From Podarcis melisellensis (Eukaryota), in NCBI GenBank assembly GCA_964234715.1, contig OZ174289.1: 64,000 nucleotides of DNA; one strand, given 5' to 3'. Below, piece by piece: positions 553 through 34,883 of this stretch (position 1 is its first letter; each line of letters begins with the position of its first letter). The notes under the pieces are model-generated. The model ran no database searches, was not told where the DNA came from, and worked only from the letters and a program-made list of their open reading frames with translations. The position numbers were made by a program, and so were the translations under genes.

Positions 553-1208
553 TACTCTGTACAGAACACCACACCAGAACAAAAGAGAAAGTGAAACAGG
601 CTCCTTCTGGCCTATTATTACAGTCAGCATGACCTTGATAAGAAAGAGATAACAGAATGAGTTTGAACAAGCTATTCAGCTTCTTTGAAATTATAACCTA
701 AACATAAAGAGCCTTCTACTTATTTCTAAGAAGAAGAGAGACTTGTTTTTTAGCTAGAAACTTGCGCCTGGCACCAGCTTGTATCACACAGAAAAAGCTT
801 CCACAACCCTACTTGAATCAATTAGAATAGGAAAGATCTCTGCACATCAAAAGGAAAGATCTCTGCACATCAAATACCCTCTGCACCAAAAAATGCAAAC
901 TGACAGTTTTTTCAGTTAGATCTGTTATCAACTGTAGAGTGAGAGAGCACACATACACACACATGTGTAAATATGTTTTAGTATACCAAGTAAAGTAATG
1001 TGTTAAGTTTAAACAGAGAAGATTGTACAGTCTTTTATAGGAAAGAAAAAGAGAAATATATTTTTAAAAGGGTCAAACAACCTGGGGAAAATTTCATGCA
1101 TATAAATAGCAGAGTTTTATTGTCTTATTCCTTTTGAAAACCACGAGTTTGTTTCTGTCGTCCATTGTATATAATTTTTATTAAACAAACAATAAATTTT
1201 GCTAATAC

Positions 1209-1298
1209 CTTTCAATGAGGGCAATGTTTATCCGCAGGTGTTCAAGTCTGCTACTTTTTGTCCGCTTACCCATAAACTTCTTGGTTACAATATTAATC
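1209..1298 (-). CDS. TTF1: TTF1 coding exon 7 ([11 protein letters not shown]...NIALIER)
   Basis: Polypyrimidine tract plus cttaag|G acceptor, AG|GTATTA donor, 90 nt; resembles WTEILTKRM...SLIER of mammalian TTF1 (recalled). Confidence 0.85.
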
Positions 1299-2741: not shown

Positions 2742-5700
2742 TTTTATTTATACCCCGCCCTCCCCAGCCAAGGCCGGGCTCAGGGCGGCTAACAAGCAAT
2801 AATAAAAACGAGTTGAATGAATACAACTTAAAAACAAGATTAAAATACAACATTAAAATATTGAAACATTAAAATATTAAAATGCAGCCTCATCACAGGA
2901 GGAGAAAGGGAAAAGAAAAAAGAAGAAAGAAAGAGGAGAAGGGAATTAAATTGGCTCCAAGCCAAAGGCCAGGTGGAATAACTCTGTCTTACAGGCCCTG
3001 CGGAAAGAAATCAGATCCTGCAGAAATCAGATCCTGCAGGGCCCTTATCTCATGATGTCGCATGGATCACTGTGGCCAGGTCAGGAGGAAAAGGGAGGAA
3101 CAATTTGCCTGAGGACAGCTGGCAGGGGTTTCTTGAAAGGATCATTCTGCAGACCCTACTAGAGGTGTCATGGATGGGACCTTTTTGCATGCATGTTGCC
3201 AGTGGCTGATGAGAGTTGTGCTCAATGTCTAGAGGGAGACAAAGGTTCCCTGACCACTCTTACCACTTCTGTTTACACTGCCTCCAGTGCCTGGTGCCCA
3301 CTTTGGCTTCCACTTTGGACCACGAGATGCCCTTCCAGAGATTCTCATACGTGACCATGAGTGCTCCATCCTCATCCTCTTTCTCTGAAGCAGAGTCTGA
3401 GTCTCTCATTTTGGACAGCAGCGTCTCCTTGATGGCTTGAACTAGCTTCCTTGTCTCTTCAGAACCCCAAGGACCGGAGTTATACGCTGAATTCATTTAA
3501 AAGGGGGAAATACTGATTTAATTCATTATCAGCTCTAGACATCTTGCAAGGGCTTATGCAGTGGAAGGTCTTGGCTGGCTAGCATCAGTAACAAGAATGA
3601 CAAACTGGATTGCTGGTTTAAACAGATAGCAACAGTTCTCCATTCAACCTAGTTCAGTAGTTCCCAAACATTTTTGGGCCTCTGTCCCCTTGGCTCCCTC
3701 ACCCTCAAGTTGCCGAATTTGAATGACAGAGGTAAGAAAGTACCATAGAATAAATGATCCAAAAAAGATACACCAGCATGCCCAATTTCCATAATTCTGC
3801 TTTTTGTGGTGAAATTTTTAAATAATTATTTTAAAAGCCCTGAGCCCTGGTTTGATGAAGGATTAGGCCAGGGTTGGGGTGGGGGGGGGGAAGAGCAGGA
3901 GTGTTAATATACCACATTTGATCTCAGAAAATTTTGTTTCAACTGAATGGCTGCTGCGAGACATCAGGTCCGAGATCTTTTTCCAGTTGTTGCCATACAT
4001 GGCTTGATACTTCTTGAGCTTCTTTTTCTCCAGCTCAGAATACCTAGGGAGAAAAGGGGTTGCTGTTCTCAATGAGCTAGTTGCACTGGTAGTGGGTTAG
4101 TGTGTCAGACTTGTGGTAATTATACTTTACAGAGTTGTGCGGAGGTTGCCCCAAGTTGTTAGGCCCTTTTTAATAGTTTTCTTTTTCTCCCAGAAAAACA
4201 ACAACAACTATGCAACACTTGCTTTTAAAGTTTAAAAATAACATATGGCTTTTACTAGGTGTGCTTGCTCTTGTCAGATTGAATGAACAAGAAAGGCAGG
4301 TAATACTTATACTACTGAAACATATTTACATGAACTTGTTTCTGAGACTGACTAATATTTACAGACTGACTATGAGGCAGAGAGCAGCACAACACAATAT
4401 ACTTGCTACAGATTCTATGCTACAGCATTAACTCTTTGCATAGTATTCTGGATGCACCCTTCCTATGACTAAGACATAGTAGACTAGGGTTCAAATTCCC
4501 ATTCAGCCATGAAGTTCATGAGTCAGCTGCAGTCACTCAAACCAACCTACCTCACAGGGTTGCTGTGAGGATAAGATGAGGAGGAGCTCCTTGAAGGAAG
4601 GTTATAAATGTAATAAACATAATAAACATATAATAATAATAATAATAATAATCATCATCATCATCATCATCATCAAGGAGATGGAGTGACTGCTTTATGA
4701 AGAAAGGTTGAAGCATTGTGGACTTTTCCACATAGAGAGAAGGCAATTACTTGGTGACATGATAGAAGTTTCTAAGCTTATGCATGGCTTGGAGAAAGTG
4801 GAGGGACAGAAGTTTTCTCCCTCTCTCATAACATTTGAACTCATGGACATCCTATTAAGCTGAATTTTGGAAGATAAAGGGACTTCTTTATGCACCAGAG
4901 TTAAAATATGGAGGATGCTCCCACAGAAGGAAATGATGGCCACCAATCTAGAGTGTTTTAAAAGAAGATTAGATAAAATTCATGGGGAGAGGGCTATCAG
5001 TGTCTACTAGCAATGATGACTATGCTCTGCTTCCATGGCCAGCAGCAGCAATGATCCTAAAGACCAGTTGCTGGAAACCACAAGAGGGGAGAGGGCTCTT
5101 GTGCTCAGGGTACTGCTTGCTGCTTTCCCACAGACATGTGGATGGCCACTGTGAGAAGAAGATGCTGGACTAGGTGGGCCATTGGCAGCAGGCTCTTATG
5201 CTCTGACTTCACTCTGTAGGAGCTGGCCTTCAGCAGATAGCATATTATTGGGAGGTCCATTTGCTATGATGCAGGAATCGTCCATTTTGTGTAGTGGCAT
5301 GCTAGATTTGGAACTCCCTCATGCTACACATCAGACAGTGGCTGTCTCTATTGCTTCCATGACTTGCTTCCTTGAGATCAGGAGCCAATAACCCCAACCC
5401 CACAAGTATGCATTGAACTGGAAGTGACAAAGGACAAAAGTTAAAGCTTTAGTGAAATCAGAAATCTGGAGCTAAAACGTGAGTCTTTTGGAGTTCAGGC
5501 AGAGAGAAAAACTTTCTGAGTAGGAACTCCAGAACCCTGTCCTGTTAGGCTCGGTGGCCAAGTATCCTGGGAAGCCTCCATGACAACAGCAAAAAACCCC
5601 AGAGAAGCCCAGTTGCCTTTCTTACCTTCCATTATAATTCTTGGGATCGTACATTTTTCTTGCTCGGTAATATACTAGCCTCCAAGGCCTTGGAATTCCC

Positions 5701-8700
5701 TGAGCTTCAGAAGAATCGATAAAGATGCATTAAACTCGACATTTTGTGATTAAAGACAATCTACATTAAGGAGCTAATTGGATTATGGGTTGCTGATTTT
5801 GCAACAGTTACGTTATGATTGTGTTTTTATTCACCAAAATATTACCACCCTTTATTCAATTTATATAATAAGCCCAGGGCAGCATTTATTCGTTATGAAC
5901 CATCTCCCTAAACTGTCATCTGTGAGCAGCCATTCCATCAGGCTGCCTCAGTGTGGGAGAGAGAGGAAGCCGAAGGCCATCAGCTTGGCCAAAAGACCAG
6001 CTCCATCAGAGCCTTTGACTCCTGAAGTATGCAAGTTGGTAATTGTTAGAACAGCTGTTTAAAGGGTCCTCAGTTTCATTCCCGCCCTTCCCTCCCTGAT
6101 GTTGCTGGACACCCATTGGTCCCAATCATCACAGTCAATGGTGATGGGAGTTCATAGAATTGGAAAGTACCCCAAGGGTCATCTAGTCCAGTGTTTTTCA
6201 ACCACTGTTCCACGGCACACTAGTGTGCCGCGAGATGTTGCCTGGTGTGCCATGGGAAAAATTGAAAAATTCGAAAGATTTAAAAATAAAGTATTTTATA
6301 ATTTTTCATATTTCTGTTTACTTACTATTTCATAATAAAGTAATTATAAAATACTTTCTTTGTGCTTATTTGATTCCTATTCAAGAGAATTACTTTAAAT
6401 ATAGTCAATATAGGCACAGAGTAAATTTTTTTAACATTTTCTAATGGTGGTGTGCCTCATGATTTTTTTCATGAAACAAGTGTGCCTTTGCCTAAAAAAG
6501 GCTGAAAAACACTGATCTAGTCCAACCCCCTGCAATGCAGGAATCTCAACTAAGCATCCCTAACAGATGGCCATCCAATCTCTGCTTAAAAACCTCCAGC
6601 AAAGCAGAGTTCACAATCTCCCAAGGGAGTCTGTTCCACTGTCAAACTGCTCTTACTGTCAGAAACTGCTCTTACTTCCTGATGGTTTTGTGCAGTAATA
6701 TCTACAGAACCAAAGGTTTTCCATCCCTGACTAACTTGTATATAACTAGCTAGCTTTTGCCCAGAATTGCTTGGGAATCCAAGAAATGAAGAAACCCAGG
6801 GCAGTTTTGTAAGATTTCAGTTCGCCATCTTGATTCAAAATGGCATCCAATGGTATCCAAACAAACCTAAGTACCTGCTCCGCGATCTCAGGAACCATCA
6901 CGCTAAATTTGGCTACAGTATCTTAACAAGTGTCCATACACATGGTAAAACAAACAACTTTCCCAAATATGTAATAGATTATGGTTTGATTCGGACAAAG
7001 GAGGGAATTTGGACAGCTTCACAAATGTACTAGAGAGGCAAATCTTTTAGCAAGACTACCCCCTCACTACCAAGTTACCCACAAAAGCCACCCAGTCAAA
7101 TACGCACCAATCTTTGCACCAAACAAGTTTTTAGTTTTCAGTTTGTTGATGGATTCTCTCTCTTGGGGGAACCTGTGAGCAAAGAGGAGTTTTTCTGCAG
7201 ACTCTATCCCAGTGTCTTTCAAGAAGGCCTCAATATTGTGCCGCAGCTGATTGTTTTCTTTCCTGGAAAATTTGCCAAACCGCACAGCAACGCCTACATC
7301 ATTTCCAAGGGAGAATAGGAAAGTTTCAGATTTCAGACCTTGCCCTTCAGCGTTAATCACTCATTCATAACGCTGAGTAGTTTTCAGGGCCACATGGCCA
7401 CGTATACCTTGCAACATGAGCCTCATGGATAACTTGTCTACTGTCAGCTTTTGTGAAACTGGCCATTTTTCAGGACCCAGGACTCCTAAATTGTGCTTGG
7501 TGTTCCCATAAAACAGGTGCAGTAACCTTTGGGTCTCTAGATATAGTGGTACCTTGGGTTAAGAACTTAATTTGTTTTGGAGGTCTGCTCTTAACCTGAA
7601 ACTATTCTTAACCCCACTTTAGCTAATAGGGCCTCCCACTGCTACTGCATTGTTGCCACACGATTTCTGTTCTCATTCTGAAGAAAAATTCTTAACCCAA
7701 GGTACTATTTCTGGATTAGCGGAGTCTGTATCCTGAAGCGTCTTTAACCCGAGGTGCCACTGTATTGCTCAACTCCAGCTCCCAACGGCCCCAAGCGTGT
7801 TTAGCAAATGGCGAGGTATGATGGGAGTTGGAAGCTCAGCAACCTCTAGATGGCCATAGCTTCTCTACACCTACCATAAAATGATAAGCTAGCTGTAGAT
7901 GTGGGTTTGGGTCTTGGTTATTAGGACAAACACCAAATGTTTGCCATCTCAAAGCCAGAGGTGGGAAACATTGTGACCCTCCACATGGTTGCTAGACTTT
8001 TATCTCCCACCATCCTTGACCATTAGCGATGTGGTCTGGGGCAGACAGGAGTTAAGAGTCCAACAACATTTGGAGGGCCACAAGTTTCCCACCCCTGCTG
8101 AGCATGTACACACCTACACACGCACAAGTGACATATATGAGGGCAGACCATGCTCTTTGATTTTCTGAATTGGGAGTCAAGAAATGTGGTGTCCCAACCT
8201 TTTCCCCACAAAATAATCAACATCTAGAGAACTACCGGTTACTCACCACTGTTATGCCCCTTGCAAAGCACACATGTGTGTATGTGTAAAACCTACCATT
8301 CCACCAGGTTATCTACCAGTTCTGCCAGAATACCAGCTGCAACAGAAACCTCCTACCCCTAAACTGTTTCTGTGTCAGCTGGTTATTAAAGCCCTGTTTG
8401 GTGCCTGAGTTTGTGTTTTCCTCTGCCTGCCATGTCCTCCTTTCCTTATGTGCTGTCTTTTTAAAATTGTGGGCCCATAAGAAGCGATTGCTTTGTTTTA
8501 AGGGATTGTATGTAAGGCACTCAGAGCCTCTTTTGGTTGAAGAACGGGGTACATGTGGTCTGAATAAATATACATATATATACACAAATGCACACCCTTT
8601 CTTTCAATGAATACATATACAGTAACAACATTTGTATTCCACCTTTCCTCCCAGGATGAAAGGGTAGTGTACACTTTCCTCCCCCTCTGCATTTTCATTA

Positions 8701-11509
8701 TTTGAGTATTAATCACCTGTACATAACACTTTGGAGATTATACAAAGAAATTGCCATGACCTTTGATTTACTGAAGAGCCTACCCAAGTGAAAGGTGTTC
8801 TCACTCAGGACTGTACACACCTTTTTTCTTAAAATTTCTAAACCTGACCAGGTCCCGACCAGCCAGCTGTCTGATCGCTGAATCACTCAGGGTCCTGATG
8901 TGAGGAATGAACTCTTCCAGCTCCTTGGTGGCAGAGTCCAGATCTTTCATTGAAAGCTGAGAAAATTCTACAAACTCATTGTCCACAAGGGAAAACTTGC
9001 TGGAAGATGATTCCTCAGCGTCTGAATGGACAGGAGTTGGAGATTTCTGTGGCCTGTTAGGAGAGCAAAACGTGAGGCCTGCATACTATTACTGGCACTT
9101 GTTGGCACTGAAAATCGCTTTGGGATGCCAGGGGAAAGCCCGGCATTAGCTTGTGAGACACATGCTATTGACAAAAGCCACACCTCACCAAGACACCTGT
9201 CTTGGAAAAATTACTTACTAGGTGACCTGATCAACTAGCCCACTGATGCTTATGCAGTGTTGGAATAGCATATCTAATGCTTGAGTGTAAGATTCTTGGA
9301 ATGTGATGTGTATATTGAAACAATTTACTATGCACACAAGCTTGGATAAGGAATACTAGTGGTGGCTGGCAGCTGAAACACAGTCTTTTAGTACAATCAG
9401 GCACTCCAACCATGGAAACGTTTTACAATTTGGGGGGAATGAATACAGCCAATTATTATTATTATTATGAAGACGTGTGCATGCACACAAAAGCTTATAC
9501 CCAGAACAAACTTAGTTGGTCTCTAAGGTGCACTGCGTCAGACCAACACAGCTACCTACCTGAATCTGACTGGCTGTGTTTCTACATTGTAAGCCAGTGG
9601 GAAGCAACTATTTCTGATACCTGTAAGCTGCCTGGAGTGCCTTTTTCAGCTGAAGTGGCAAAGGAAGGAAGGCTTCAACACTCCTAAGCTCCACCCTCTT
9701 TCTGGTGCATCTTCTGAATCCCAGACTCCCACTTCTACACATCTGGGACAGATCTGGGTCAGGACACACAAGAGATCTGTTGCCAACAAACTTGTTTTAG
9801 CCTTGAGCCTGTGCATGAAGCCCTTCACCCTTTTGCTAAACATCAATTTAAATAATAAAACAGTTCATATTTTCCTCACACCTGCCAAGAAAGCCCATCC
9901 ATGGGTAAGGTACTTACCCACCATCAGAAGCATTTGTGCTGGGAGCATTTTTACGCTTATGTGATTTCTTTTGTGTGCCAGGGCTGCTGAGGTTCACAGT
10001 TCTGTCCAACTTATTCACCTCATTGTTCTCCTCTTGGGAAAGATCTGAGGGCTGTGTTAAAGGTACAGGAGGAGGCAAAGGTGTAAAGTCCTCCTTCACG
10101 TCCTCTGTGTCACTGCAGTTGGTTGTATTGTGCTTGTGCAATCCTGCATTTTCCAAGTCACTGGCATCAAGCTGGCTGCTGGCCTCTTCTGGAGTTTCAG
10201 GTTTTTTACGCTTTTTCTTCTTCTTCTTCCGTGCAATGGAACTACAAAACTCCTCAGTTTTGTCTGACTCAGTTGCCTCTTTTCTCTCCTGGGAAAGGTC
10301 TGAGTGCTGTGTTAAGAGTACTGCAGGAGGTGAAGGTGCAAAGAGATCCTTCTGTGTGTCCTCTGTGTCACTGCAGTCTGTTCTATTGTGCTTGTGCAAA
10401 CTCAGAGGGTGAGCCCTACTATCGTTGAGCCTGTCAGAAGCTCCATTTGCCTCGGCCTGCTCTGTTAACAAGAGCACTTTTGCCTTCTTCTTCTTCTGAA
10501 CAGGTGTGGATTCAGAGACATAATCTGCATTTTCCAAGTCACTGGCTTCAAGCTGGCTGCTGGCCTCTTCTTGAGTTTCATGTTTTTTACGCTTTTTCCT
10601 CTTCCGTGCAATGGGACTACAAAACTCCACAGTTTTGTCTGACTCAGTTGCCTCTTTTCTCTCCTCCTGGGAAAGGCCTGAGTGCTGTGTTAAGAGTACT
10701 GCAGGAGGTGAAGGTGCAAAGAGGTCATTCTGTGTGTCCTCTTTGTCACTGCAGTCTGTTCTATTGTGTTTGTGCAAACGCGGAGGGTGAGCCCTTCTAT
10801 CGTTGAGCCTGTCAGAAGCTCCATTTACCTCGGCCTGCTCTGTTAACAAGAGCACTTTTGCCTTCTTCTTCTTCTGAACAGGTGTGGATTCAGAGACATA
10901 ATCTGCATTTTCCAAGTCACTGGCTTCAAGCTGGCTGCTGGCCTCTTCTGGAGTTTCAGCTTTTTTATGCTTTTTCTTCTTCTTCCGTGCAATGGGACTA
11001 CAAAATTCTGCAGTTTTGTCCGACTGAGGTGTCTGCTTTTTCTCCTGCAGGGAAAGATCTAAGCGCTGCATTAAGGGTACCACAGGATGCAGGCTGCTGG
11101 CCTTTTCTGGAGTCTCAGGAATGCAAAAGTCTCTGCCACCCTCTTGTTCACTTTGTTGATACTTCCTCTTTTTCTTATTACATACGCGAGTATCTGTTCC
11201 AGACTTGCTATTCAGCTCACTGTCTGTTGGGATCCAAGTAGCATCTGACTCAGAGTCTGGAATCTCTTTCCCATCTTTTATGTTCTTTGTTTTTTTTCTA
11301 CAGGCCCCAGTATCTTCGGTATCCTCAACGAGCCAAGGAAAAATTGAGGAATGTCCGGAAGATGGAGGCGAGCAAGGAGCAGCCTCCACAGGTTGGTCAT
11401 CCCCCTGTCCATTAAGGCCCTCCTTCCTCTTCTTTTTTTTCTTCTTCTTCTTCACCAACTCTGGGAAATGAAAGCCATTTGAGGCTGATGATGCATCAGC
11501 TCTGTGCAT
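1209..11509 (-). CDS. TTF1: Transcription termination factor 1 (Pol I), 3'-partial. Coding exons: 11509-9918, 9053-8821, 7293-7108, 5704-5626, 4043-3913, 3486-3264, 1298-1209
   Basis: The spliced frame is open (2534 nt) with GT-AG introns and matching phases. Peptides [42 protein letters not shown] and [22 protein letters not shown] match the TTF1/Reb1 Myb-like C-terminal region. Adjacent to SETX, as in other vertebrates. Confidence 0.93.
1340..2690 (+). mobile_element. Degraded L1-clade LINE ORF2 3' fragment, interrupted by a SINE
   Basis: Remnant peptides [27 protein letters not shown] and LPDLKLYY; boundaries approximate. Confidence 0.65.
1836..2280 (-). mobile_element. Sauria (Squam1) SINE with an internal ~80 bp insert
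   Basis: tRNA-like head and Bov-B-like tail on the minus strand; TSD CAAGTAYAAATTAC at ~1821 and ~2283. Confidence 0.85.
2702..3045 (-). mobile_element. L2 LINE 3' fragment with (TAA)n tail
   Basis: (aat)n followed by tttataccccgccc, the 3' end signature shared with the other L2 copies. Confidence 0.6.
3264..3486 (-). CDS. TTF1: TTF1 coding exon 6, Myb-like repeat 2 ([12 protein letters not shown]...QCKQKW)
   Basis: ttcag|CG acceptor, TG|GTAAGA donor, 223 nt. Confidence 0.92.
3913..4043 (-). CDS. TTF1: TTF1 coding exon 5, Myb-like repeat 1 ([24 protein letters not shown]...)
   Basis: cctag|G acceptor, G|GTATAT donor, 131 nt. Confidence 0.92.
4680..5200 (+). mobile_element. CR1 LINE 3' fragment
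   Basis: YEERLKH-like and GDMIEV-like remnants, plus a CR1-type 3' UTR. Confidence 0.65.
5626..5704 (-). CDS. TTF1: TTF1 coding exon 4 ([27 protein letters not shown])
   Basis: ctgaag|CT acceptor, AG|GTAAG donor, 79 nt; too short for the ORF track. Confidence 0.9.
6189..6514. mobile_element. hAT (Charlie-like) MITE nested in a CR1 3' fragment (~6150-6675)
   Basis: TIR CAGTGTTTTTCA...TGAAAAACACTG; exact 8-bp TSD ATCTAGTC. Confidence 0.88.
7108..7293 (-). CDS. TTF1: TTF1 coding exon 3 ([14 protein letters not shown]...)
   Basis: gtag|GC acceptor, G|GTGCGT donor, 186 nt, phase 1 to 1. Confidence 0.92.
7544..7762. mobile_element. Tc1/mariner MITE, family B
   Basis: (C/T)AGTGGTACC...GGTGCCACTG flanked by TA; homologous to the copies at 12275 and 54455. 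Confidence 0.8.
8821..9053 (-). CDS. TTF1: TTF1 coding exon 2 (PQKSPT...ELEEFIPHI...FRNFKKK)
   Basis: ctaacag|G acceptor, G|GTGTGT donor, 233 nt, phase 2 to 1. Confidence 0.88.
9918..11509 (-). CDS. TTF1: TTF1 coding exon 1: large Lys-rich, low-complexity N-terminal exon with internal repeats
   Basis: Acceptor ttttaaag|GAAATT (exon starts 11515), ATG at 11509, donor GG|GTAAGT at 9918; lies within ORF 9914..11542. Confidence 0.85.
9990..11120 (-). repeat. TTF1: Coding tandem repeat in TTF1, period 378-381 bp (126-127 aa), about 3 copies
   Basis: Anchor tccaagtcactgg recurs at 10152, 10533 and 10911; peptide EEASSQL(E/D)ASDLENA occurs 3 times. Confidence 0.9.
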
Positions 11510-11542
11510 AATTTCCTTTAAAAAGCAAAGGAGAAGTGGCAA

Positions 11543-11545
11543 ATA

Positions 11546-11591
<46 letters not shown>

Positions 11592-12497: not shown

Positions 12498-13260
12498 TAA
12501 AAGGTTTGTTCATATATTGGTTTGCTATACTAAGATGAGATCATCCAAAGCAGCTTTTACATCATGCACCTAAGGGTAACACTTTAGGCATCTGACAAAA
12601 TGGGACCAGTGCACAAAAGCTTCTGTACTACAGGAGATGAAGTCAGCATAGTGCTCTCCAAACTTTCATAACCAGCTGCCTTTTACCAAGTTAGACCATT
12701 GGTCCATCTAGTTCAGTACTGTCTTCAGGGTTTCAGGTATGAGTCATTCCCAGCCCTATCTGAAAAAGCTGGGACCTACTGCATTCAAGGCAGATGCTCT
12801 ACCACTGACCTGCAGCCCTAATCATAAGAACATAAGAAGAGTTCTTCTGGATCAGGCTAATGGTCCATGTAACCACCAAGCAGAAATTGAGGTCACCAGC
12901 ACTCCCTCCTTCTCTGGTAGCCAGCAAGTAGTATATCCTACCTATGGTTATAAAATTTTAGGATGCACACACACAGCAAACATACACTCCACAGAAAACC
13001 AATCCTTCCATCATCAAAATTTAGGAAATATTCCCCGAGAAAACAGAACAATCCTAAAAAAACCATCTTGGCTCTCCTAATGAATTTATTTCCTCTGCAG
13101 AAGAGAATTTTTTCTTGATACATTAGTTCTTTCACTTCCAAATCCTGTCTTAAGGGCATACTTTGTGCATGAATAGGGTGGACCTGTGACCTGGATTCAA
13201 GAACTAAAGTATTTACTTCAAAAGAATAGCCAGACTGCCCAGGTAATGCAACCAGTAAAA

Positions 13261-14379: not shown

Positions 14380-14630
14380 AAAGAAGAGGAGGAGTTTGGA
14401 TTTGATACCCCGCTTCATCATTACCCGAAGGAGCCTCAAAGCGGCTAACAGTCTCCTTTCCCTTCCTCCTCCACAACAAACACTCTGTGAGGTGAGTGGG
14501 GCTGAGAGACTTCAGAGAAGTGTGACTGGCCCAAGGTCACCCAGCAGCTGCATGTGGAGGAGCAGAGACACGAACCCGGTTCACCAGATTAGGAGTCTAC
14601 CGCTCTTAACCACTACACCACACTGGCTCT
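14380..14630 (-). mobile_element. Squam3-like (MIR/Ther1-derived) SINE
   Basis: Minus-strand tRNA-like head GAGAGCCAGTGTGGTGTAGTGGTTAAGAGC, CORE-like GTGACCTTGGGCCAGTCAC, (CTT)n tail. Confidence 0.75.
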
Positions 14631-14743
14631 CCAAAGCAATTAAGCATCCCTTCCTGCTTCGAAAACAGCATCCCGAGAACCCTAATTCCTCATTACGAAC
14701 TGACCAGGCTACTGTAATGCGAGATAAACACATGAAAATATAC

Positions 14744-14830
14744 CTGATGCATCTGCTTCTTCTTCGGTAACAGACCGAGGCAAATCAGTCCAGCACACGC
14801 GCCACGGGCTCCACTTCCGGTTGTTTTACA
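14744..14830 (-). other. TTF1: Putative non-coding first exon of TTF1
   Basis: CAG|GTATAT donor on the minus strand at 14744, next to an ETS site and a GC box; 5' boundary is approximate. Confidence 0.4.
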
Positions 14831-15665
14831 CCGTTTCCTCCCCTCAGCGGAAGGAGCGTGTTGACTTGCAAAGGCTAGAGCGCCTCGGCCGAACTTTCAA
14901 AATACGTTCCATCCCCGCCCCTGCGGGTTGGTTGGAGAGAGGAATAAACATCTCCCGAGAGGAGAGGCGGGACGCGTCTTTTCGGGAGGCCAGGAGCTTG
15001 TGCTAAACATGGGTGGGTTGGATTGGGTTCTGAGCGGCTATTTTAAGCAGAGCGATGTGTGTGACATACTCAGAGCTCCTTAGATAAAGGGTGATGTTAG
15101 AAAGCGGACCCAGGTAAGAGGCCAAGGCTCAAGCATCTGCTAAGCTACGGTGATCACTGCGTGTGGTTTTTGAGCCGGATAGCTTCTCTTTCTCGAAGCC
15201 TAAGCCCACTTCACAGGGTTGTTGTTGCGTCTGTCTCTGTAATAGCGTTACACAGCAGAAAGAAATAAGCACAATAAAGTACATGCACACGAACTGCGCC
15301 CTTCTAAAACGAAGAGTGCAGCCAAATCAATGAGCGATCAGAAACAATTTAAAAAATACAGGCGCAACTAGAATTTCGCTGTGAGTTCAAGGCAGCACGT
15401 GGAGTTTTGTTTTCCTTTTCTCCTGGTGACGCGAGAAACTCTGCCGTCCAATCAGCACCGGCCTAAGGTCCTGCGTTCCCGCCTCCCTTTCATTTGGCGC
15501 AACCTTCGCAGGGCGCGCAGGCGCCGTGCGTGCGGAGGCGAGCGAAGAGTTTTTGTGCGTGTGTGCTAACTATATATGTGTATATCTATATCCAACGCAT
15601 CGTCTCCGGCAGTGAGAATGACCCGCCTACTGTTTTATAAGTCTATGCAAAATGAGTAATAAGGC

Positions 15666-15803
15666 AGAAGAGCGGCAAGCCGAGTCTGAGGCGACTCTAC
15701 TGCTTTTCCTAACTCTAGGGTTGCGGGAGGGGAGAAGAGCGGCAAACAGAGCCTGAGGCGACTCTAGAGTTTTTCCTAACTCTAGGGTGGCGGGAGAGCG
15801 GGG
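15666..15803. repeat. Two-copy ~67-bp tandem repeat in the promoter
   Basis: agaagagcggcaa...gaggcgactcta...ttttcctaactctagggt at 15666 and 15733. Confidence 0.85.
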
Positions 15804-15989
15804 AGAAGGCTTTTTGAGCACGCGCGTTTGTGCTCTTGCCTCTCATTTACTTATCTACTATTGTGGGCGGAGCCAGGGAGGCGGGGCCAAGAGTCTAGAA
15901 AAAGGAGGCTCAGATGCCGGCTCGGTCTCTTTCGCTGGAGCGAGAGGCTTCCGTCCCGTGGTGGGCGGGGTCAGTGCCTGGCGGAACAG

Positions 15990-16103
15990 CTTGAGCGAGC
16001 GGAGAGAACGAGAGAGCGAGAGCCGGAGGCAGCAAGGTTGTCCGCGCCTACGGGCCGGCTGTGGCAGCCACGTTGCCTCACGGGCACCTGTCCGGAGCAG
16101 GAG
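15990..16103 (+). other. SETX: Putative non-coding first exon of SETX
   Basis: Strong donor GAG|GTGAGT at 16103/16104 inside the CpG island, downstream of GC boxes; start is approximate. Confidence 0.6.
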
Positions 16104-17660
16104 GTGAGTGAGGCGAGGGGCTGGCGGTGTGTGGGAGGCTTATGAGGGGCTGCGGCGAAGGTGTGGGGAGGAGGGCAAGGAGTAATACAGCAACTCAACA
16201 GTTGCTTATGGTTGCGGGGCTGGCACGGCTATTCCCCGCTTCAGGTACCCCCCGCAGCATCTCTCTGTCCCTCCAGTTCTGCATGTTAGAAAGTGCCTTT
16301 GCTGCATCCCTTTCCCCCCACTGTCAGGGGAGAGTCCCCGTGAAATGTGCGTGTAATTCGCATGTTACACTTAGGGTCGGTTCCGGGGGGTTCCTCGCGT
16401 GTCCGCGAAGTCTCTAAAAGACGGGAATTCTTGGGGTCGCTGCTGCTGCGCAGACGGCAAGGTGGAGGGCTGCTTACCGGGCTTTGGAAGAAGACGCGGG
16501 CGGTTCCCGGAGTTACTCGTGTAGCTGTATGTAGCCCCTCTTTCCTTATACGTGAAGTAACTTTAGCCCCTGAAGAGATGCACATTATACATTTGTAGCA
16601 TTGTTCTTTGTGGCAATTTGTAGCAATTCTATGCCAAACGGTACAGTTTAGTACAGTCTAATGTTTTTTAAATAACATTTTTTAAAAGTTAAATATTGTT
16701 TTGGTTTGCAAAAGTACATGCATTGTCTTTTTCAGGTTGTAGGCTTTTTTACATTTGAAGTGAGACATTAATGTTGTATGCAGAATAAAGTTGGGGAAGA
16801 AGAGGGGGGAGAGGGGGTGGGTTGGGCATGGTCATGCTTGGTCTTTGTGTGTGGTTTTTATGTCAGCGTCGCTTGGGTCGTTTCCCTTTCTATCCATTTA
16901 ATTTCCTTGGTACTGAGAGAGGTGGAGGGCAGGCATGGCTGGTTGTCTTTAGCGGGCTGCAGTGAGATTTGTTTGCCTGGGTGCATGGGGGGGATTGTTG
17001 GGTTGTTAGCCATATTGATTCATATATTGTTGGTGGGTTATTATTATCACTGCCTGCTTTGTAAGACAGCAGAAATATTGTCAAGGCCACAGGAGGATTA
17101 ACCCAGGGAACAGGCAATTAATGTGTTCCAAGAATGGGGATGAGGTGAGACAAGAGTTCTGTCCTTGCAGAAAATCCACAGAAAAATACAGCTGTAGTGT
17201 GTCCAAGTGCTACACCTCTGCTGTCAGGATCTGACCATTTTGCCATCCAGAGGGGAGTCTCAGGCTACTGAAAGAGTTTATCTGCTTTCCTTTGCTCTTT
17301 ACCTTCCTCATTCTCTGAATAAAATCCATTTAAGAAACAAGCTTGGTGTCCTTTATTGCCTACTTGAATCAAGAAAACCTTGGCCAGTTTGCCAGTACAG
17401 TAGCACCGTGGCAGAGCAACTGCTTTGCATTCAGAAGGTCCCAGGTTCAATCCTCAGCATCCCCAGGTAAAGCTGTGGAAGTGCCCTGTCTGAAACCCTG
17501 GTGAGTTGCTGCTGATGGACCAATGGTCTTGTCATGGTATGTGGCAGGTTTCTATGCTCCTATGCTGATGTGTTCTGCAAAAGTAGAGTTTAACTATCAA
17601 TTATAACTTCATAACGATTTATAAAGTGCCTAAAATCTAAACATTGGATAATGATTAAAA

Positions 17661-18383: not shown

Positions 18384-18986
18384 GATTAAAAAGAACGAAC
18401 CATGCCCATACACTTAGTCTTAAAAAATACCTACCCATAAGGAAGAGTAAGGACGTCAAAAGGAGATGCAGATACAGAGTTATGGCTTGGGATAATTCTG
18501 CTGTTTAAATAATGGCAATGCATGAAAGGTGTAGTTGTAGTGTCCCTGCACCTAGGCTGTGGAATTCCCTGATAATATTTAGGATGCACCATCAGCACTT
18601 TGTTTTAAATGCCTGCATTGAACATAGCCAAATTCATAATTTTATCACTCAGTTCCTTTGTTACGGCATATCACTGTACAGGTGCTTGCTTTTATGCTGT
18701 TCTACAGATGTGACTGCCACCTTGTTGATTTGTGCAGTATGCCTGTAAAATAAATGTATTGGGAGGTAGCAGGTTACAAAGAACAGGAAAGAAGTGAGTC
18801 AGGGACAGTAGTATTAGGAAGTAATCTGTGAGTAAGCAAAGAAAAAAATGAATTTGGCAGAGTGAAAGCAAATGGGAAAAAACCAAAGTAACAAATTTGG
18901 CTCATCTGCTTTAATGTGTATTTGGGGTAGACATTTATATTTTATTGTGGGGAAATTTTAATTGCCTTAAAGCAAGATTATCCAAA

Positions 18987-19350
18987 GGGACACGGGTGGC
19001 GCTGTGGGTAAAACCTCAGTGCTTAGGAGTTGCTGATCGTAAGGTCGGCGATTCGAATCCCCGCGGCGGGGTGAGCTCCCGTCATTCGGTCCCAGCTCCT
19101 GCCCACCTAGCAGCTTGAAAGCACCCCTAAGTGCAAGTAGATAAATAGGTACTGCTTTCTAGCGGAAAGGTAAACGGCGTTTCCGTGTGCTGCGCTGGTG
19201 CTGGCTCGCCAGTTGCAGCTTCGTCACGCTGGCCACGTGAACCAGAAGTGTCTTTGGACGGCGCCGGCTCCCAGCCTCTTAAGCAAGATGAGTGCGCAAC
19301 CCTAGAGTCGGACACGACTGGCCCGTACGGGCAGGGGAACCTTTACCTTT
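18987..19350 (+). mobile_element. Sauria SINE, full length
   Basis: GGGACACGGGTGGCGCTG head, ACCTTT tail; TSD AAGATTATCCAA. Confidence 0.9.
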
Positions 19351-19360
19351 AAGATTATCC

Positions 19361-20306
19361 AATAATAATAATAATAATAATTTATTATTTATACCCCGCC
19401 CATCTGGCTGGGCCTCCCCAGCCACTCTGGGCGGCTTCCATAAAAACCAAAAATACAGTAAAATATCACACGTTAAAAACTTCCCTGAACAGGGCTGCCT
19501 TAAGATGTCTTCTGAATGTCAGGTAGTTGTTTATCGCTTTGACATCTGCTGGAAGGGCGTTCCACAGGGTGGGCGCCACTACCGAGAAGGCCCTCTGCCT
19601 GGTTCCCTGTAGCTTTGCTTCTCGCAATGAGGGAACCGCCAGAAGGCATTCGGCGCTGGACCTCAGCGTCCGGGCAGAATGATGGGGGTGGAGACGCTCC
19701 TTCAGGTATACTGGACTGAGGCCGTTTAGGGCTTTAAAGGTCAGCACCAACACTTTGAATTGTGCTCGGAAACATACTGGGAGCCAATGTAGGTCTTTCA
19801 AGACCGGTGTTATATGGTCTCGGTGGCCGCTCCCAGTCACCAGTCTAGCTGCCGCATTCTGGATTAGTTGTAGTTTCCGAGTCACCTTCAAAGGTAGCCC
19901 CACGTAGAGTGCATTGCAGTAGTCTATGCGGGAGATTACCAGAGCATGCACCACTCTGGCAAGACAGTCCGCAGGCAGATAGGGTCTCAGCCTACGTACC
20001 AGATGGAGCTGGTAAACAGCTGCCCTGGACACAGATTTGACCTGTGCCTCCATGGACAGCTGTGAGTCCAAAATGACTCCCAGGCTGCGCACCTGGTCCT
20101 TCAGGGGCACAGTTACCCCATTCAGGACCAGGGAATCCTCCACACCTGCCCGCCTCCTGTCCCCCAGAAACAGTACTTCTGTCTTGTCAGGATTCAACCT
20201 CAATTTGTTAGCCGCCATCCATCCTCCAACCGCCTCCAGACACTCACACAGGACCTTCACTGCCCTCACTGCTTCCGATTTAAAAGACAGGTAGAGCTGG
20301 GTATCA
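19361..20306 (-). mobile_element. Young 5'-truncated L2 LINE (RT C-terminus, 3' UTR, (TAA)n tail)
   Basis: ORF 19466..20269: WMAANKLRLNPDKTE, LGVILDSQL, DYCNAL, QNAAARL, HITPVLKDLHWLPV; truncated at DTQLY. Confidence 0.9.
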
Positions 20307-21346
20307 AAAAGCAGTGAACAGTTTGTGTATTAAGGTTCCATAACTAAAGCTGAAGTTTGGGCACCCCTTCACTTGTGATCTTGTGCAGTTGATTTATCAC
20401 TCCAAATTTATAAGCTGCTTCTCCTCCCCAAAAGGAAGCTTTGGAGCTAAAACATTAACCAAACTACTGGGCATAATAGCAGTTAATATTCATTGTAAAA
20501 CTTCCTTAAATTGCATTGCGAAGGCAAATATTAATAAAAGTGTTAATATTCCTCCTGAGCGCAAACTAGGATGTGAGACTGCCTGGTTTGTCCTGGGAGC
20601 ACAATAGGTTGCCAGCACAGAGTTGTGCCTTTATTTTCAAGTGTTGGCAGATTCCTTGCTCATTTTGGCCCTGGATGGGGTTTTTTTTGGGGGGGGTGCG
20701 CGCGCGCGCATAATGGTCATGACTGAATGAATACCATCAAATCAATTTACATCTTAATGTTTGGCAAAATAAACAGCTGATGTACCAGTCTTAAGCATCT
20801 TTAGTTCAGGGCCACCGTGATGGTCACCAGAGTGCTTATCTCTTCCCTGTTTCTGAAAACCAGCAACAACTCTGATGCAGGGAACCATCTATTTTTGGCA
20901 AATATTTATGCTTTAACACAACCTACAGTATGTTGTGTTGCCTTGTCAGGCAGGAAGCTGGGAGATAGATGTATGTGGGGTGTGTGTAAAAGTTACATTG
21001 ACACAATAAGTCATTCGGTCACAAAATATTGATAGTTATTGTATGTACAGATGTGAACCTGTATTGTGGAGCTTCCCCCTGAGGTAACTGAGGAGGGGCT
21101 GTAGCTCAGTGATGGAGCTGCACCCACTTTGCATGCAGACAGTACAAGGTTCAGTCCCCAGCATCTCCAAGTAGGGCTTGGAATTGCCCCCTGTTGAGCT
21201 GATTTGGCAAGCTCATTTATGTTCTTATGCCAGGCTTGGTAATAGGCAACTTTCTGTGTTACTGAACTTGGCTCAGGTCATTTTTGTGTTCATGTTTTTA
21301 AATAATTAAAACAATAATTTCTCTTATTTTTGTGTTTATCTGCAGA

Positions 21347-21523
21347 ATGGAGACGTGCTGTTGGTGCACCCCTACTGATTCGGTTATCACCACCTTAAAG
21401 AACTATGCCTATTCTTTACTGCCTCCAGAAAAAATTGCTGCAGCCAATGAAGACCTTTGTTACTGTTTGGAGTGTGTGGATGAGTATCATAACGTGAAGG
21501 ATGATTTGTCATCCTTACATGAG
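21347..21523 (+). CDS. SETX: SETX coding exon 1
   Basis: tgcag|aATG start; GAG|GTAATT donor; METCCWCTP...SLHE. Confidence 0.95.
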
Positions 21524-24500
21524 GTAATTTGCTTTCATTTATAGGCCACCATATCCTGGCTGTGTTGGGGTTAACAGATGACAGAGACAGTCAAAGCAGA
21601 TTTAGGTAGGCAGAAGACCAGTAGTTATTGGTTTAGAGATGGGGAGCACAATTCACCTGGTGGGAGAGATGGGTGGTGATGTTGTCAGGTGACTCATTTT
21701 CCCCTGCCCTATGTGATGAGCAGCACTTTAAAGCCCCAACAACAAAATGTTGGGGCTGCCAAACAAATCTCTATCTTCCAAATGCTGAACACTGCTTTCA
21801 GTTCTAAGTTAGTCACTCATGCCCGTTAATTTAACGGGGACCAGCTCAGATCGAATACAATCCACTGTAGGGGTTTTGAAGTTGAATTCACAAGGTGGCT
21901 GCAGCAACTATGAAAGTAAATTATCTGCAGTTGATTTACTTTGGAACTGAGTCTTTCTTTGTGTAAAATAAAAAAGTGGTCTGCAAATCCTTTTCTTTGC
22001 CTTGTTGCTCTGTCTCTATGTCCTTAAAAATAAAGTCCTTTGTTCCTCTAGTTCTGAAAACAAATTTCAGATTAACTGTTGCTGTTTAGACTTTCATGTG
22101 GTGTTCACTGCTTGTTTTGTCTCTTTCCTTTGGTGTAAATCAAAATCTGAATTGCACAGAGAATGATATAACAAAGTCTATACAAGTGTTTTTACCAGCT
22201 GCAGACTTTGGAGGGTACACCCCCCACCCATATTTTTTCTTACCTCTGTCGTGTCCTTCTGTTTTATACTTTTGAATGCTTATCCTGTTGTAATTAAACT
22301 CTAGTTCCCATTTATGGTATATACGGAAGACAGCCCTGGGTCTTTTGACCCTTTAATTATTTCTCTTTTCTCTCCTATAAAAACTATGCAAGACGCTTTC
22401 TTTTAAAGTTTAAATACCAAATAATTTTTACTTTAGTGTACTTGCCGTTGCAGATTAAAATATACAATGCAGGTGGATGCTAATACGGCTTACATAGGTT
22501 ACACTGCCACAGACTAACTAATCAAGGCAGACAGTAGCACAACTTAACATACCTGATGCTGTAACAGTTAAGACTGTTCTACTAACTGTCATAGAGTTCT
22601 ACAGTTCTTGCAATTAACCCTTTACATATGCATTTTGGATGCTAACATCCCACATATTGAACCCTTAGGAAGAGTTTTTGTTCATTACATTCTGACATGT
22701 CACTCTTTTTTGCTCTTCTTTTTTGAATAACTTTTTACTAGGCTTTGGAATAATACATGATGCATATAAATAGACAAAGTCATCACATGTCACTTGTTTA
22801 TCACAAAAATAGCATAATGTGCAGTAATATCTACAACATATGATTCATCATTAGTGGTCAGTGTATAGTTTCTTGGTTCGTGAATTGGTTAAAACAAAAG
22901 CAAAGGGGAAACAGTACAGAGTAGAGTTAAAAAATATTTAACATTGTATTGCCAAACATCCAATCAGGAACCCTTGCGGTTGTGCTTAGATCACCATATT
23001 TTTCGCTCCATAAGACGCTCCTGACCATAAGACGCACCTAGTTTTTAGAGGGGAAAAGCAAGGAAAAAAATATTCTGCGCAGAGCATGTAAGCGGCTTTC
23101 ACTTTTCTTGCTTAAAACCCTTCCATCCCTCCTCCCTCTTCGCTGAGAAGCCAGAGAGCAAGCTGCGCAGCTCTCGCTGAAGCCAGCAGAGCAAGAGCGA
23201 AAGCTGCGCAGCGCCTCTTGTTCTGCTGGCTTCCCAGCAAAGCGGGAGGAGGGACGAAAGGGAGCCCTTACAAGGGAGCGTTGAGCAGAGCCTGGCAGCG
23301 GCTCTTGCTGGCTTTTCTAGGAGGTGTGGGAAGGGACAGAGGGCAGCCCGTCAGTCCCTTCTCCCTCCTCGGGGAAAAGCCCCCAAAAGCTGTACACACG
23401 CTCCATGCGGCTCTTTAAAGGGAGCGCTGAGCAGAGCCTCCTGCCTACATTCACTCCATAAGACGCACACACATTTCCCTTTACTTTTTAGGAGGGAAAA
23501 AGTGTGTCTTATGGAGCGAAAAATACAGTATCATGCTACTTTTACATTATCAATGAAACAATAAAAAGTTTTGGTGTACAGTGGTACCTCGGGATGCGAA
23601 CGGGATCCGTTCTGGACCCCCGTTCTCATCCTGAACAGAGCGTAAGACGTGATAGCGCGTCTACGTGGGTCATGTTTTGCCTCTTTTGAGCATGCGTGTG
23701 ATGTCATTTGAGCGTCTGCGCATGCATGAGTGGTGAAACCCAGAAGTAACGCGCTCCGTTACTTCCGGGTTGTTGCGGAGCGCAACCCGAAAGCGCTCAA
23801 CCTGAAGCACATTCAATCCAAGGTATGACTGTATTGACGAATTTGGGAGGGGGAGTTCAAAGTGAAGATGATTACCGTATTTTTCACCCTATAAGACGCA
23901 CTTTTTCCCCTCCAAAAATGAAGGGGAAATGTGTGTGCGTCCTATGGGGCGAATGCAGGCTTTCGCTGAAGCCTGGAGAGCGAGAGGCTTCGGTGCGCAC
24001 CGACCCCTCTCGCTCTCTAGGCTTCAGGAAGCTATCCACAAGCCTCGCGTGCCTGGCGGTAGGTCCCGCCAGGCACGCAAGGCTTGCAGGCAGCAGCCTG
24101 CATCCCGAAGCACGGGGCGAGCTGCGGAGCCCGCCCCGTGCTTCGGGCAGATGTCAGCAAGCCTTGCGTGCCGGGCTCGCAAGGCTTGCAGACAGCAGCT
24201 TGTTCTGGGGGCTGGGGTCGGGGGAAGCTTGGGCTTCCCCCGCGCCAGCCCCGCGCCTGGGGGGAAATAAAAAAACTAGGTGCGTCCTATGGGGCAAAAA
24301 ATATGGTACATTTAAATTTAAATTGTAAGTGTACTTATTTAGTCTGTATTTCTTGGTCTGACAGTGGTATTCAGTCATACCTCATATTACGTTTACTTCA
24401 TGATACGTTTTTTCAGGGGGTTTTTCAGGTGTCAGGTTGGGTCCCGCAGTGACCCAGAAGTACTGGAGAGGGTTACTTCCAGGTTTCGCCGCTCGCACAT

Positions 24501-33500: not shown

Positions 33501-34883
33501 CCTGACACAAATCTGTATTTTTCAAATTACATTAACAAGTTTGAGAAAACAACAGTTCCAACAATGCTTTCCTTCATAGTTCTAGGCAATAACAAACAAG
33601 CTGTTTTGTGTTTTATATATTAATAGAAACACCTTGAACTTGGCCTGGTAACAAACCAACAGGTTGGTCTGTGAGCATGTGTGTTATATGCTGACAAGGT
33701 CTCACACCTGTCAGCAGCCATGATGCACCATTCTGCACTAACAGCAGCACAAGGAAAGCCCGACACACATTGCATTAATGCAATATTGAGGCAGCCAAAC
33801 CTTTATAGGAAGCTTGTTCTTTTCATCAGGCTGAGGGCCTGGCAACAGAAATCTTTGCCTGGTTAAGACCCTTGGGGGGCTACCCTGTGTGAGAAGAAAT
33901 AAACAAACTTAACTTTTGTAAGTATCTCTGAATTCTCTTTTGGCTAAAGGGTGAGGTATAAAAAAAGACTTGTATCTAACTTCTACTTAGAAGAGATTCA
34001 TTGATATTAACAGTCTAAGTTAGTCATGCCCATGAATTTCAATTGGCCTACTCTGCATAGGACTGACACTGGATTCAACCTAAAGTAACATCCTAGTTGT
34101 TCTACACTGTTATTAACACAGTTCTATTTTTAGTGATTCCACCCAGGTTTTTTATTTGTTTTTGATAGGTGTTTGTTAAAATATCCCTGTCCCTCATTTT
34201 CTGGGATGATTGGTAAGTGAGGAGGCTGTGGAGAAGTCCACGGCCTTCAAGTAAGTTTTCTCTGAAACATATCTACACCGTCTGGTTTGGAATGTGAACC
34301 TTTAGGTTAGACTTGGTAACAGTTGTCTTTCACACCAACTTGGCTTCTGCTCCACTTTCCATAACAATGACTGCTCTGATTCCTTACCATAGTAATTAAT
34401 AATGTCCCTTCAAACCCACAGGTCCGTCGATGGGCCATTATGACAGCCAAGAGTCTGGGAAAGGTGGACAGGGACGATTACTATGACATACAGGAAGTGC
34501 TCAATTGCTTGCTCAGAGTTATAGAGCTGAACCTCTTTGAAAACGCTTATGTTTATAACCCCACAACAGTTGAGAAGGGTAATCTCATCTTGTTGCCTGA
34601 CCACCTGTACGATATTACCAGTTACAAAAACTACTGGCTAGGTGAGTAGAAGCAGCTGAGATGGTCTGAAGGGTAAAGGGATTTGGCATGCCCCATTCCA
34701 CTGGGCATGGTAGCATTGTGTTACAGCAGGAATAGCTAAACTTTCCCCCCCTCCTTTTGGTAAGAGCCACATTGGCTCATAACAAATCCTCGGAGGACCT
34801 CATGCCAGCAGTGCTCCCAAAACGGGTACGGGGTGAAAGTGGATGCGACCACCATACACACAGCCTCTGCCTGTGTCCCTCCC

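Follow-up and report, generated by a model that had tools for sequence, protein, structure and literature searches.

Bidirectional promoters have been defined as those of divergent gene pairs whose transcription start sites (TSSs) lie no more than 1,000 bp apart, and the swapping of their partners through rearrangement has been discussed for the RecQ paralogues (PMC2688522). A second system that bears directly on the present locus is the ancestral CFAP77/TTF1 pair of zebra finch and turtle, in which TTF1 stands head-to-head with a cilia gene across a CpG island. Here, the window, a stretch of 64,000 nucleotides of the Podarcis melisellensis contig OZ174289.1 from whose first letter all positions are counted, carries TTF1 on the minus strand and SETX on the plus strand, diverging from the interval 14744-16103. 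TTF1 is a Pol I termination and fork-barrier factor, and senataxin, the SETX product, is an R-loop helicase. The divergence of the two genes, proposed by the initial annotation on the letters alone, is confirmed by exons mapped with tblastn and by Pfam domains. Both genes are probably single-copy orthologues that came to stand head-to-head in a derived arrangement through an inversion of TTF1 alone, which would have juxtaposed two pre-existing promoters in a pairing that is most likely neutral.

In several respects the locus resembles mammalian-type bidirectional CpG-island promoters: the pair is divergent, CpGs are abundant and TATA motifs scarce in the interval, ETS/GABP-type, Sp1 and NRF1-like sites occur there, and the GC skew switches sign between the genes. 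Unlike such promoters, it has splice donors that are 1,360 bp apart, two islands instead of one, and a pairing that is lineage-specific. As in the ancestral CFAP77/TTF1 pair, TTF1 is again head-to-head with a neighbour across CpG-island sequence, but in the ancestral pair the partner is CFAP77 and SETX lies downstream on the TTF1 strand, whereas the squamate TTF1 is flipped. With the partner swapping of the RecQ type the locus shares a change of the TTF1 partner from CFAP77 to SETX with the divergent configuration kept, and a change of the SETX partner from none to TTF1 and then, in Hemicordylus, to an F-box/WD40 gene; it differs in that a single-gene micro-inversion followed by a megabase inversion would be involved here, and no gene duplication.

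All homology searches were run exon by exon, without joined spliced models. In the protein search, the 542-codon open reading frame (ORF) at 9914-11542 on the minus strand matched only squamate proteins named "transcription termination factor 1", and lacertid TTF1 proteins map to this strand as seven collinear exons by tblastn (11518-9917, 9064-8816, 7294-7082, 5705-5625, 4045-3911, 3487-3263 and 1297-1208), with the final ~115 codons lying beyond the window start. Identity of the window exons is 89-100% to P. raffonei TTF1, 76-96% to that of Lacerta agilis and 76-100% to other lacertid TTF1 proteins, while exon 2 considered by itself is 72-93% identical to lacertid TTF1. Membership of TTF1 is recognised by C-terminal Myb-like repeats and by orthology to annotated TTF1, and the window exons display both: the Pfam models Myb_DNA-binding and Myb_DNA-bind_6 match the exon at 3911-4045 above their thresholds, and a weaker match falls on 3263-3487. 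The TTF1 features in the window are the following:

14744-14771, minus strand: TTF1 exon 1, minimum extent, with the ATG at 14752-14750 and the donor GT at 14743-14742; the exon begins no further downstream than 14771.
9917-11515, minus strand: TTF1 exon 2, a large N-terminal exon with internal repeats, from the ORF and its translation; acceptor AG at 11517-11516.
8816-9064, 7082-7294, 5625-5705, 3911-4045, 3263-3487 and 1208-1297, minus strand: TTF1 downstream exons, from tblastn.

The start of the gene can be placed through two comparisons. The minus strand reads ...GAAGAAGCAG ATG CAT CAG|GTATAT, which makes 14744 the last base of exon 1, and the exon splices to GAAATTATGCAC at 11515, directly behind the AG acceptor. 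The annotated P. raffonei TTF1 coding sequence (CDS) starts with MHQ|EIMH, encoded by the identical ATGCATCAG|GTATATTTTC, with the same junction as in the window. In addition, the Zootoca vivipara contig OY735902.1 carries a processed, intronless TTF1 retrocopy that adjoins a BUB1-like gene (L001:9964-12661). This copy has an AATAAA at L001:12620 and a short A run, and it is flanked by the 16-nt target-site duplication AAAAGGTTTTTGTTAC at 9964-9979 and 12646-12661. Its 5' end reads GGGTGACCGAGGAAGAAGTAG ATGCATCAG|GAAATTATGCAC, with 28-30 nt of TTF1 exon 1 fused to exon 2. As a fossil mRNA, the retrocopy records the junction of exons 1 and 2 and sets the 5' end of the TTF1 mRNA at or upstream of 14771. 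The coordinate 14744, given for TTF1 by the initial annotation, agrees with both the P. raffonei CDS start and the retrocopy junction, and as the predicted end of exon 1 it is well supported.

On the plus strand, SETX extends from 21347 to the window end in 19 collinear exons (tblastn) that are 95% identical to P. raffonei senataxin, and this exon structure is collinear with that of Hemicordylus SETX across 19 exons. The ORF of 1143 codons at 42336-45767 (plus strand) is 96% identical to P. raffonei senataxin; all six matches whose clusters bear names are senataxins, each from a different species. The SETX features are:

15900-16103, plus strand: putative non-coding SETX exon 1, the start being a guess; donor GTGAGT from 16104.
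21346-21529, plus strand: first coding exon of SETX, with the ATG at 21347, from tblastn and sequence.
31308-64000, plus strand: remaining SETX exons, including a 3.4-kb exon at 42342-45746 and the helicase exons from 51688; the gene exceeds the window end.

A superfamily 1B helicase core (AAA_11 and AAA_12) behind a long N-terminal region, by which SETX/Sen1 proteins are recognised, is present. AAA_11 matches four of the window exons within 51688-61566, and AAA_12, most of which would fall past the window end, is found in the 95%-identical P. raffonei protein. The Pfam model SEN1_N gave no match on the exon at 34404-34643 and stayed below threshold in the P. raffonei protein; Hemicordylus SETX does carry a SEN1_N match, and the N-terminal exons of that gene are collinear with the window. 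Together with the large exon, which is only ~40% identical to non-lacertid SETX, the sub-threshold SEN1_N could be taken as a sign that the window gene is not the orthologue but a diverged duplicate lying on the opposite flank of TTF1, a possibility that the initial annotation had raised beside an inversion. This explanation is highly improbable: the large exon evolves rapidly in every lineage, the 19-exon collinearity with Hemicordylus SETX is retained, the named matches are each the senataxin of a different taxon, and an exhaustive protein search among 1.84 billion representatives found no second lacertid SETX cluster. Moreover, the window SETX adjoins TTF1 just as finch SETX does, so that the ancestral adjacency is kept, and the proposal of an additional copy is not supported.

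The SETX coding start reads ...ctgcag|A ATG, with the acceptor 1 nt before the ATG; consequently, at least one upstream non-coding exon must exist. A strong plus-strand donor, GCAGGAG|GTGAGT, is located at 16103/16104 inside the CpG island at 15351-16600; no other island lying between TTF1 and the start of the SETX coding exons is shared with P. raffonei. There is a further CpG-rich patch at 18951-20000, and it shares part of its length with a ~945-bp element (19361-20306) that P. raffonei lacks at the orthologous site. The annotated exon 1 of Hemicordylus SETX is likewise inside a CpG island and has a donor context that is similar by eye. We infer only from these sequence features that the donor at 16103 would close the putative non-coding SETX exon 1.

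The ~945-bp element in SETX intron 1 (19361-20306) occurs a second time in the window, at 49035-49982, and copies of 88-91% identity are present elsewhere in P. raffonei and Zootoca (L008:40233-41178; L001:17964-18899). The ORFs at 19466-20269 (minus strand) and at 49035-49982 both give a weak Pfam match to the NFRKB winged helix. The element looks like a recently mobile repeat.

From the TTF1 donor to the SETX donor, the interval 14744-16103 measures 1,360 bp. The observed/expected ratio of CpG is 0.6-1.3 across 14600-16600, compared with 0.33 for the whole window, and the usual CpG-island criteria delimit two islands separated by a lower-GC spacer. The features of the interval and its flanks are:

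14651-15150, no strand: CpG island A at the TTF1 5' end, holding an ETS site at 14813-14820 (minus), a GC box at 14915-14920 (minus) and a CCAAT box at 15022-15026 (minus).
15351-16600, no strand: CpG island B at the putative SETX 5' end, holding an E-box at 15396, a CCAAT box at 15448, an NRF1-like site at 15515 and GC boxes at 15865 and 15963.
15663-15796, plus strand: 67-nt tandem duplication between the promoters, with copies 88% identical; P. raffonei has the duplication and aligns there without gaps.

The GC skew is negative below ~14850 and positive above, with the change of sign at 14850-14900, which fits transcription leaving in both directions. Expected motif counts for the interval were derived from the density of each motif in the whole 64-kb window. 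On this basis, the ETS site CCGGAAGT at 14813-14820 (minus strand) is found once against 0.13 expected, GC boxes three times (14915-14920 on the minus strand, 15865 and 15963) against 0.57, and the NRF1-like GCGCAGGCGC at 15515 is the sole instance in 64 kb. The opposed CCAAT boxes at 15022-15026 (minus) and 15448 (plus) number two against 2.7 expected and are therefore not above chance. All the motifs listed by the initial annotation are accordingly present, and the enrichment extends to its ETS, GC-box and NRF1-like sites but not to the opposed CCAAT boxes. Sites of the ETS, Sp1 and NRF1 types are the usual content of CpG-island housekeeping promoters. From TTF1 exon 2 up to the SETX coding start, no other gene (Pfam-bearing ORF), tRNA or Rfam RNA was found, and a search within the window gave no confirmation of a possible SINE fragment at 15185-15225.

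A single collinear, gap-poor alignment of 6.1 kb with 96.5% identity joins the window to P. raffonei CM049769.1 and runs from TTF1 exon 2 into SETX intron 1. P. raffonei has the interval motifs and the two donors in identical form; at a divergence of 2.5%, this retention carries little weight. The most conserved part of the region in this comparison is 15801-16400, with 4 substitutions in 600 bp against ~15 expected at the local rate of 2.5% (p ~7e-4, Poisson estimate). This conservation is a further point for the putative SETX exon 1 in island B. Comparisons of the interval with the Varanus, Hemicordylus and Zootoca-retrocopy loci returned repeats and an exon-1 fragment only, with no alignable promoter conservation; the search of island B against the Hemicordylus SETX island (blastn, word size 7) gave nothing significant, and motif scans of the promoters of other species were not diagnostic.

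The two genes form a divergent pair, being on opposite strands with adjacent 5' ends and no gene between them. Measured from 14771, the most downstream position possible for the TTF1 5' end, the SETX donor at 16103 is ~1.33 kb away, which means that the TSSs would be within 1,000 bp of each other only if the putative SETX exon 1 were longer than ~330 nt, i.e. started upstream of ~15770. Judging from the predicted exons, the distance between the 5' ends probably exceeds 1 kb by a little, which would put the pair just outside the 1-kb limit. The interval 14744-16103 is best read as two pre-existing housekeeping-type CpG-island promoters ~1.1-1.3 kb apart and not as an ancient shared module. The promoters look separable because TTF1 and SETX would each have had a working CpG-island promoter before the proposed inversion and CFAP77 would have kept one after losing TTF1, and further because there are two islands with a gap, the finch SETX island stands alone, and the Hemicordylus genes are still annotated as full-length though separated.

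An opposing explanation holds that TTF1 and SETX are a selected, co-regulated pair, that the interval is one true bidirectional promoter and that the juxtaposition is functionally advantageous. Divergent orientation across a continuous CpG-rich patch, the retention of the pair in two Podarcis species with all motifs unchanged, and the thematically related functions of the two proteins, in termination and fork arrest on one side and R-loop resolution on the other, speak in its favour. Against it, more than 1 kb probably separates the 5' ends, and a lower-GC spacer splits the islands; the motifs are generic, with CCAAT at chance level; two Podarcis species separated by 2.5% substitutions are too close for retention to mean anything; and the pairing is derived, the ancestral partner of TTF1 being a cilia gene. 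Moreover, the pair is broken in Hemicordylus with both genes still annotated as full-length. A selected bidirectional unit is quite unlikely on this balance. Some co-expression would be expected, simply because both are broadly expressed CpG-island genes in one open-chromatin patch; for genes of this kind it would be plausible, though trivial. The possible co-regulated "termination / fork-conflict" gene pair that the initial annotation had put forward is unsupported and somewhat disfavoured.

The order of these genes in other amniotes bears on how the pair arose. In zebra finch the order is CFAP77 (minus), TTF1 (plus), SETX (plus); the start codons of CFAP77 and TTF1 are 1.4 kb apart and share one CpG island, while SETX has a separate island that stands alone, 4.3 kb past the TTF1 stop codon. 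The turtle Mauremys has CFAP77 (minus) and TTF1 (plus). In human, CFAP77 and TTF1 are presumably divergent as well, with SETX downstream of TTF1 on the same strand, an order that finch and turtle match. The squamates Varanus, Hemicordylus and Candoia instead have TTF1 (plus) followed by CFAP77 (plus) in tandem, and CFAP77 keeps its own CpG island in all three. P. raffonei has TTF1 (minus) and SETX (plus) as in the window, with annotated start codons 5.5 kb apart, and CFAP77 was not found within 10 kb of its TTF1 3' end. At the Hemicordylus SETX locus, an NTNG2-like gene with a Laminin_N domain (plus), SETX (minus) and the F-box/WD40 gene (plus) follow one another, 8.8 Mb from TTF1 on the same chromosome; TTF1 and SETX are both still annotated as full-length despite this separation. 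A tblastn search for SETX N-terminal exons gave no match in the 10 kb that precede TTF1 in Varanus, Hemicordylus and Candoia; for Varanus and Candoia this is uninformative, as only a short flank is covered upstream of a CDS that begins in exon 2.

Two further observations concern the neighbours of SETX. In Hemicordylus, the head-to-head F-box/WD40 gene encodes 454 aa and the Laminin_N (NTNG2-like) gene lies downstream of SETX (L004:921-7545, 69906-71987). In P. raffonei, a 420-aa gene with an RNase_T domain follows SETX on the same strand, instead of NTNG2 (L005:67760-68841).

The simplest reading of this synteny is an inversion of TTF1 alone in a squamate ancestor. In the ancestral amniote order, TTF1 and CFAP77 would have shared a divergent CpG-island promoter, with SETX following TTF1 on the same strand and having its own CpG island. 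A short inversion would then have flipped TTF1 alone, core promoter included, and created two junctions, one between the TTF1 3' end and the CFAP77 5' end and one between the 5' ends of TTF1 and SETX, so that the divergent partner of TTF1 would have been swapped from CFAP77 to SETX. For Hemicordylus, one further inversion of 8.9 Mb with a break between TTF1 and SETX would reproduce the order and every strand. Of the explanations that the initial annotation had offered for the arrangement, the local inversion is the one supported, by the ancestral order in finch and turtle, the TTF1-CFAP77 tandem in three squamates and the divergent TTF1/SETX pair in Podarcis. Since the taxa with derived junctions span cordylids, lacertids, varanids and snakes, the inversion would predate their common ancestor.

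The same junctions could also have arisen independently, the lacertid adjacency and the TTF1-CFAP77 tandem each through a separate, larger rearrangement. The region has been rearranged repeatedly: in Hemicordylus TTF1 and SETX are separated by 8.8 Mb, in P. raffonei the RNase_T gene stands after SETX in place of NTNG2, and the two new junctions are each seen only in different lineages, never both in one of the squamate assemblies examined. The presence of the RNase_T gene after lacertid SETX implies that the region was broken more than once and that its history is more complex than a single event. Nevertheless, one inversion of one gene accounts for both junctions, and with the further 8.9-Mb inversion it yields the Hemicordylus order and strands, whereas alternatives built on separate rearrangements need more events; they are unlikely, and the TTF1-only inversion is preferred.

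A mis-oriented contig, named by the initial annotation as the finding that could undo the arrangement, would leave the head-to-head order an assembly artefact. The window contains no N, the P. raffonei assembly, which is independent and from another species, shares the divergent pair across the gap-poor 6.1-kb alignment that spans the junction, and the complementary junction, TTF1 followed by CFAP77, occurs in three further squamate assemblies. By the P. raffonei alignment and this complementary junction, misassembly appears excluded for practical purposes.

It is very unlikely that the full sequence of an old squamate TTF1 inversion, from the promoter of a cilia gene to that of SETX, has led to a lacertid pair that is now co-regulated through a shared element. 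If such co-regulation were true, the supply of a Pol I termination and fork-barrier factor would be coupled to that of an R-loop helicase.

With the TTF1-only inversion as the preferred reading, the locus represents a clean, datable case in which a single-gene micro-inversion changes the neighbour faced by a housekeeping gene, from CFAP77 to SETX for TTF1. The later inversion that would have broken the new pair provides a small natural experiment on the separability of divergent CpG-island promoters, which here are apparently separable. Within squamates, the arrangement may serve as a synteny marker; by itself, it says nothing new about R-loops or about how transcription is terminated. The rearrangement is real, but small and of an ordinary kind, and nothing points to a particular function shared by the two genes. 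The gene order can already be read from the public P. raffonei annotation, although literature searches turned up no publication on the TTF1/SETX arrangement.

Several minor observations concern TTF1 and its surroundings. The internal repeats of TTF1 exon 2 are ~125 aa long, and residues 145-403 of Zootoca TTF1 align at two offset places; Podarcis TTF1 proteins, with 954-968 aa, are ~130 aa longer than that of Zootoca. A SINE copy occupies 14463-14631 in TTF1 intron 1, ~110 bp from exon 1, and its family has many copies in the Hemicordylus loci of the TTF1/SETX survey (L003, L004). Directly upstream of the exon 2 acceptor, a long (ATT)n microsatellite extends over 11543-11590. Finally, the ORF of the Zootoca TTF1 retrocopy is intact over 832 aa, with a C-terminal region 90% identical to the parent-type protein, and the copy may be an expressed retrogene.
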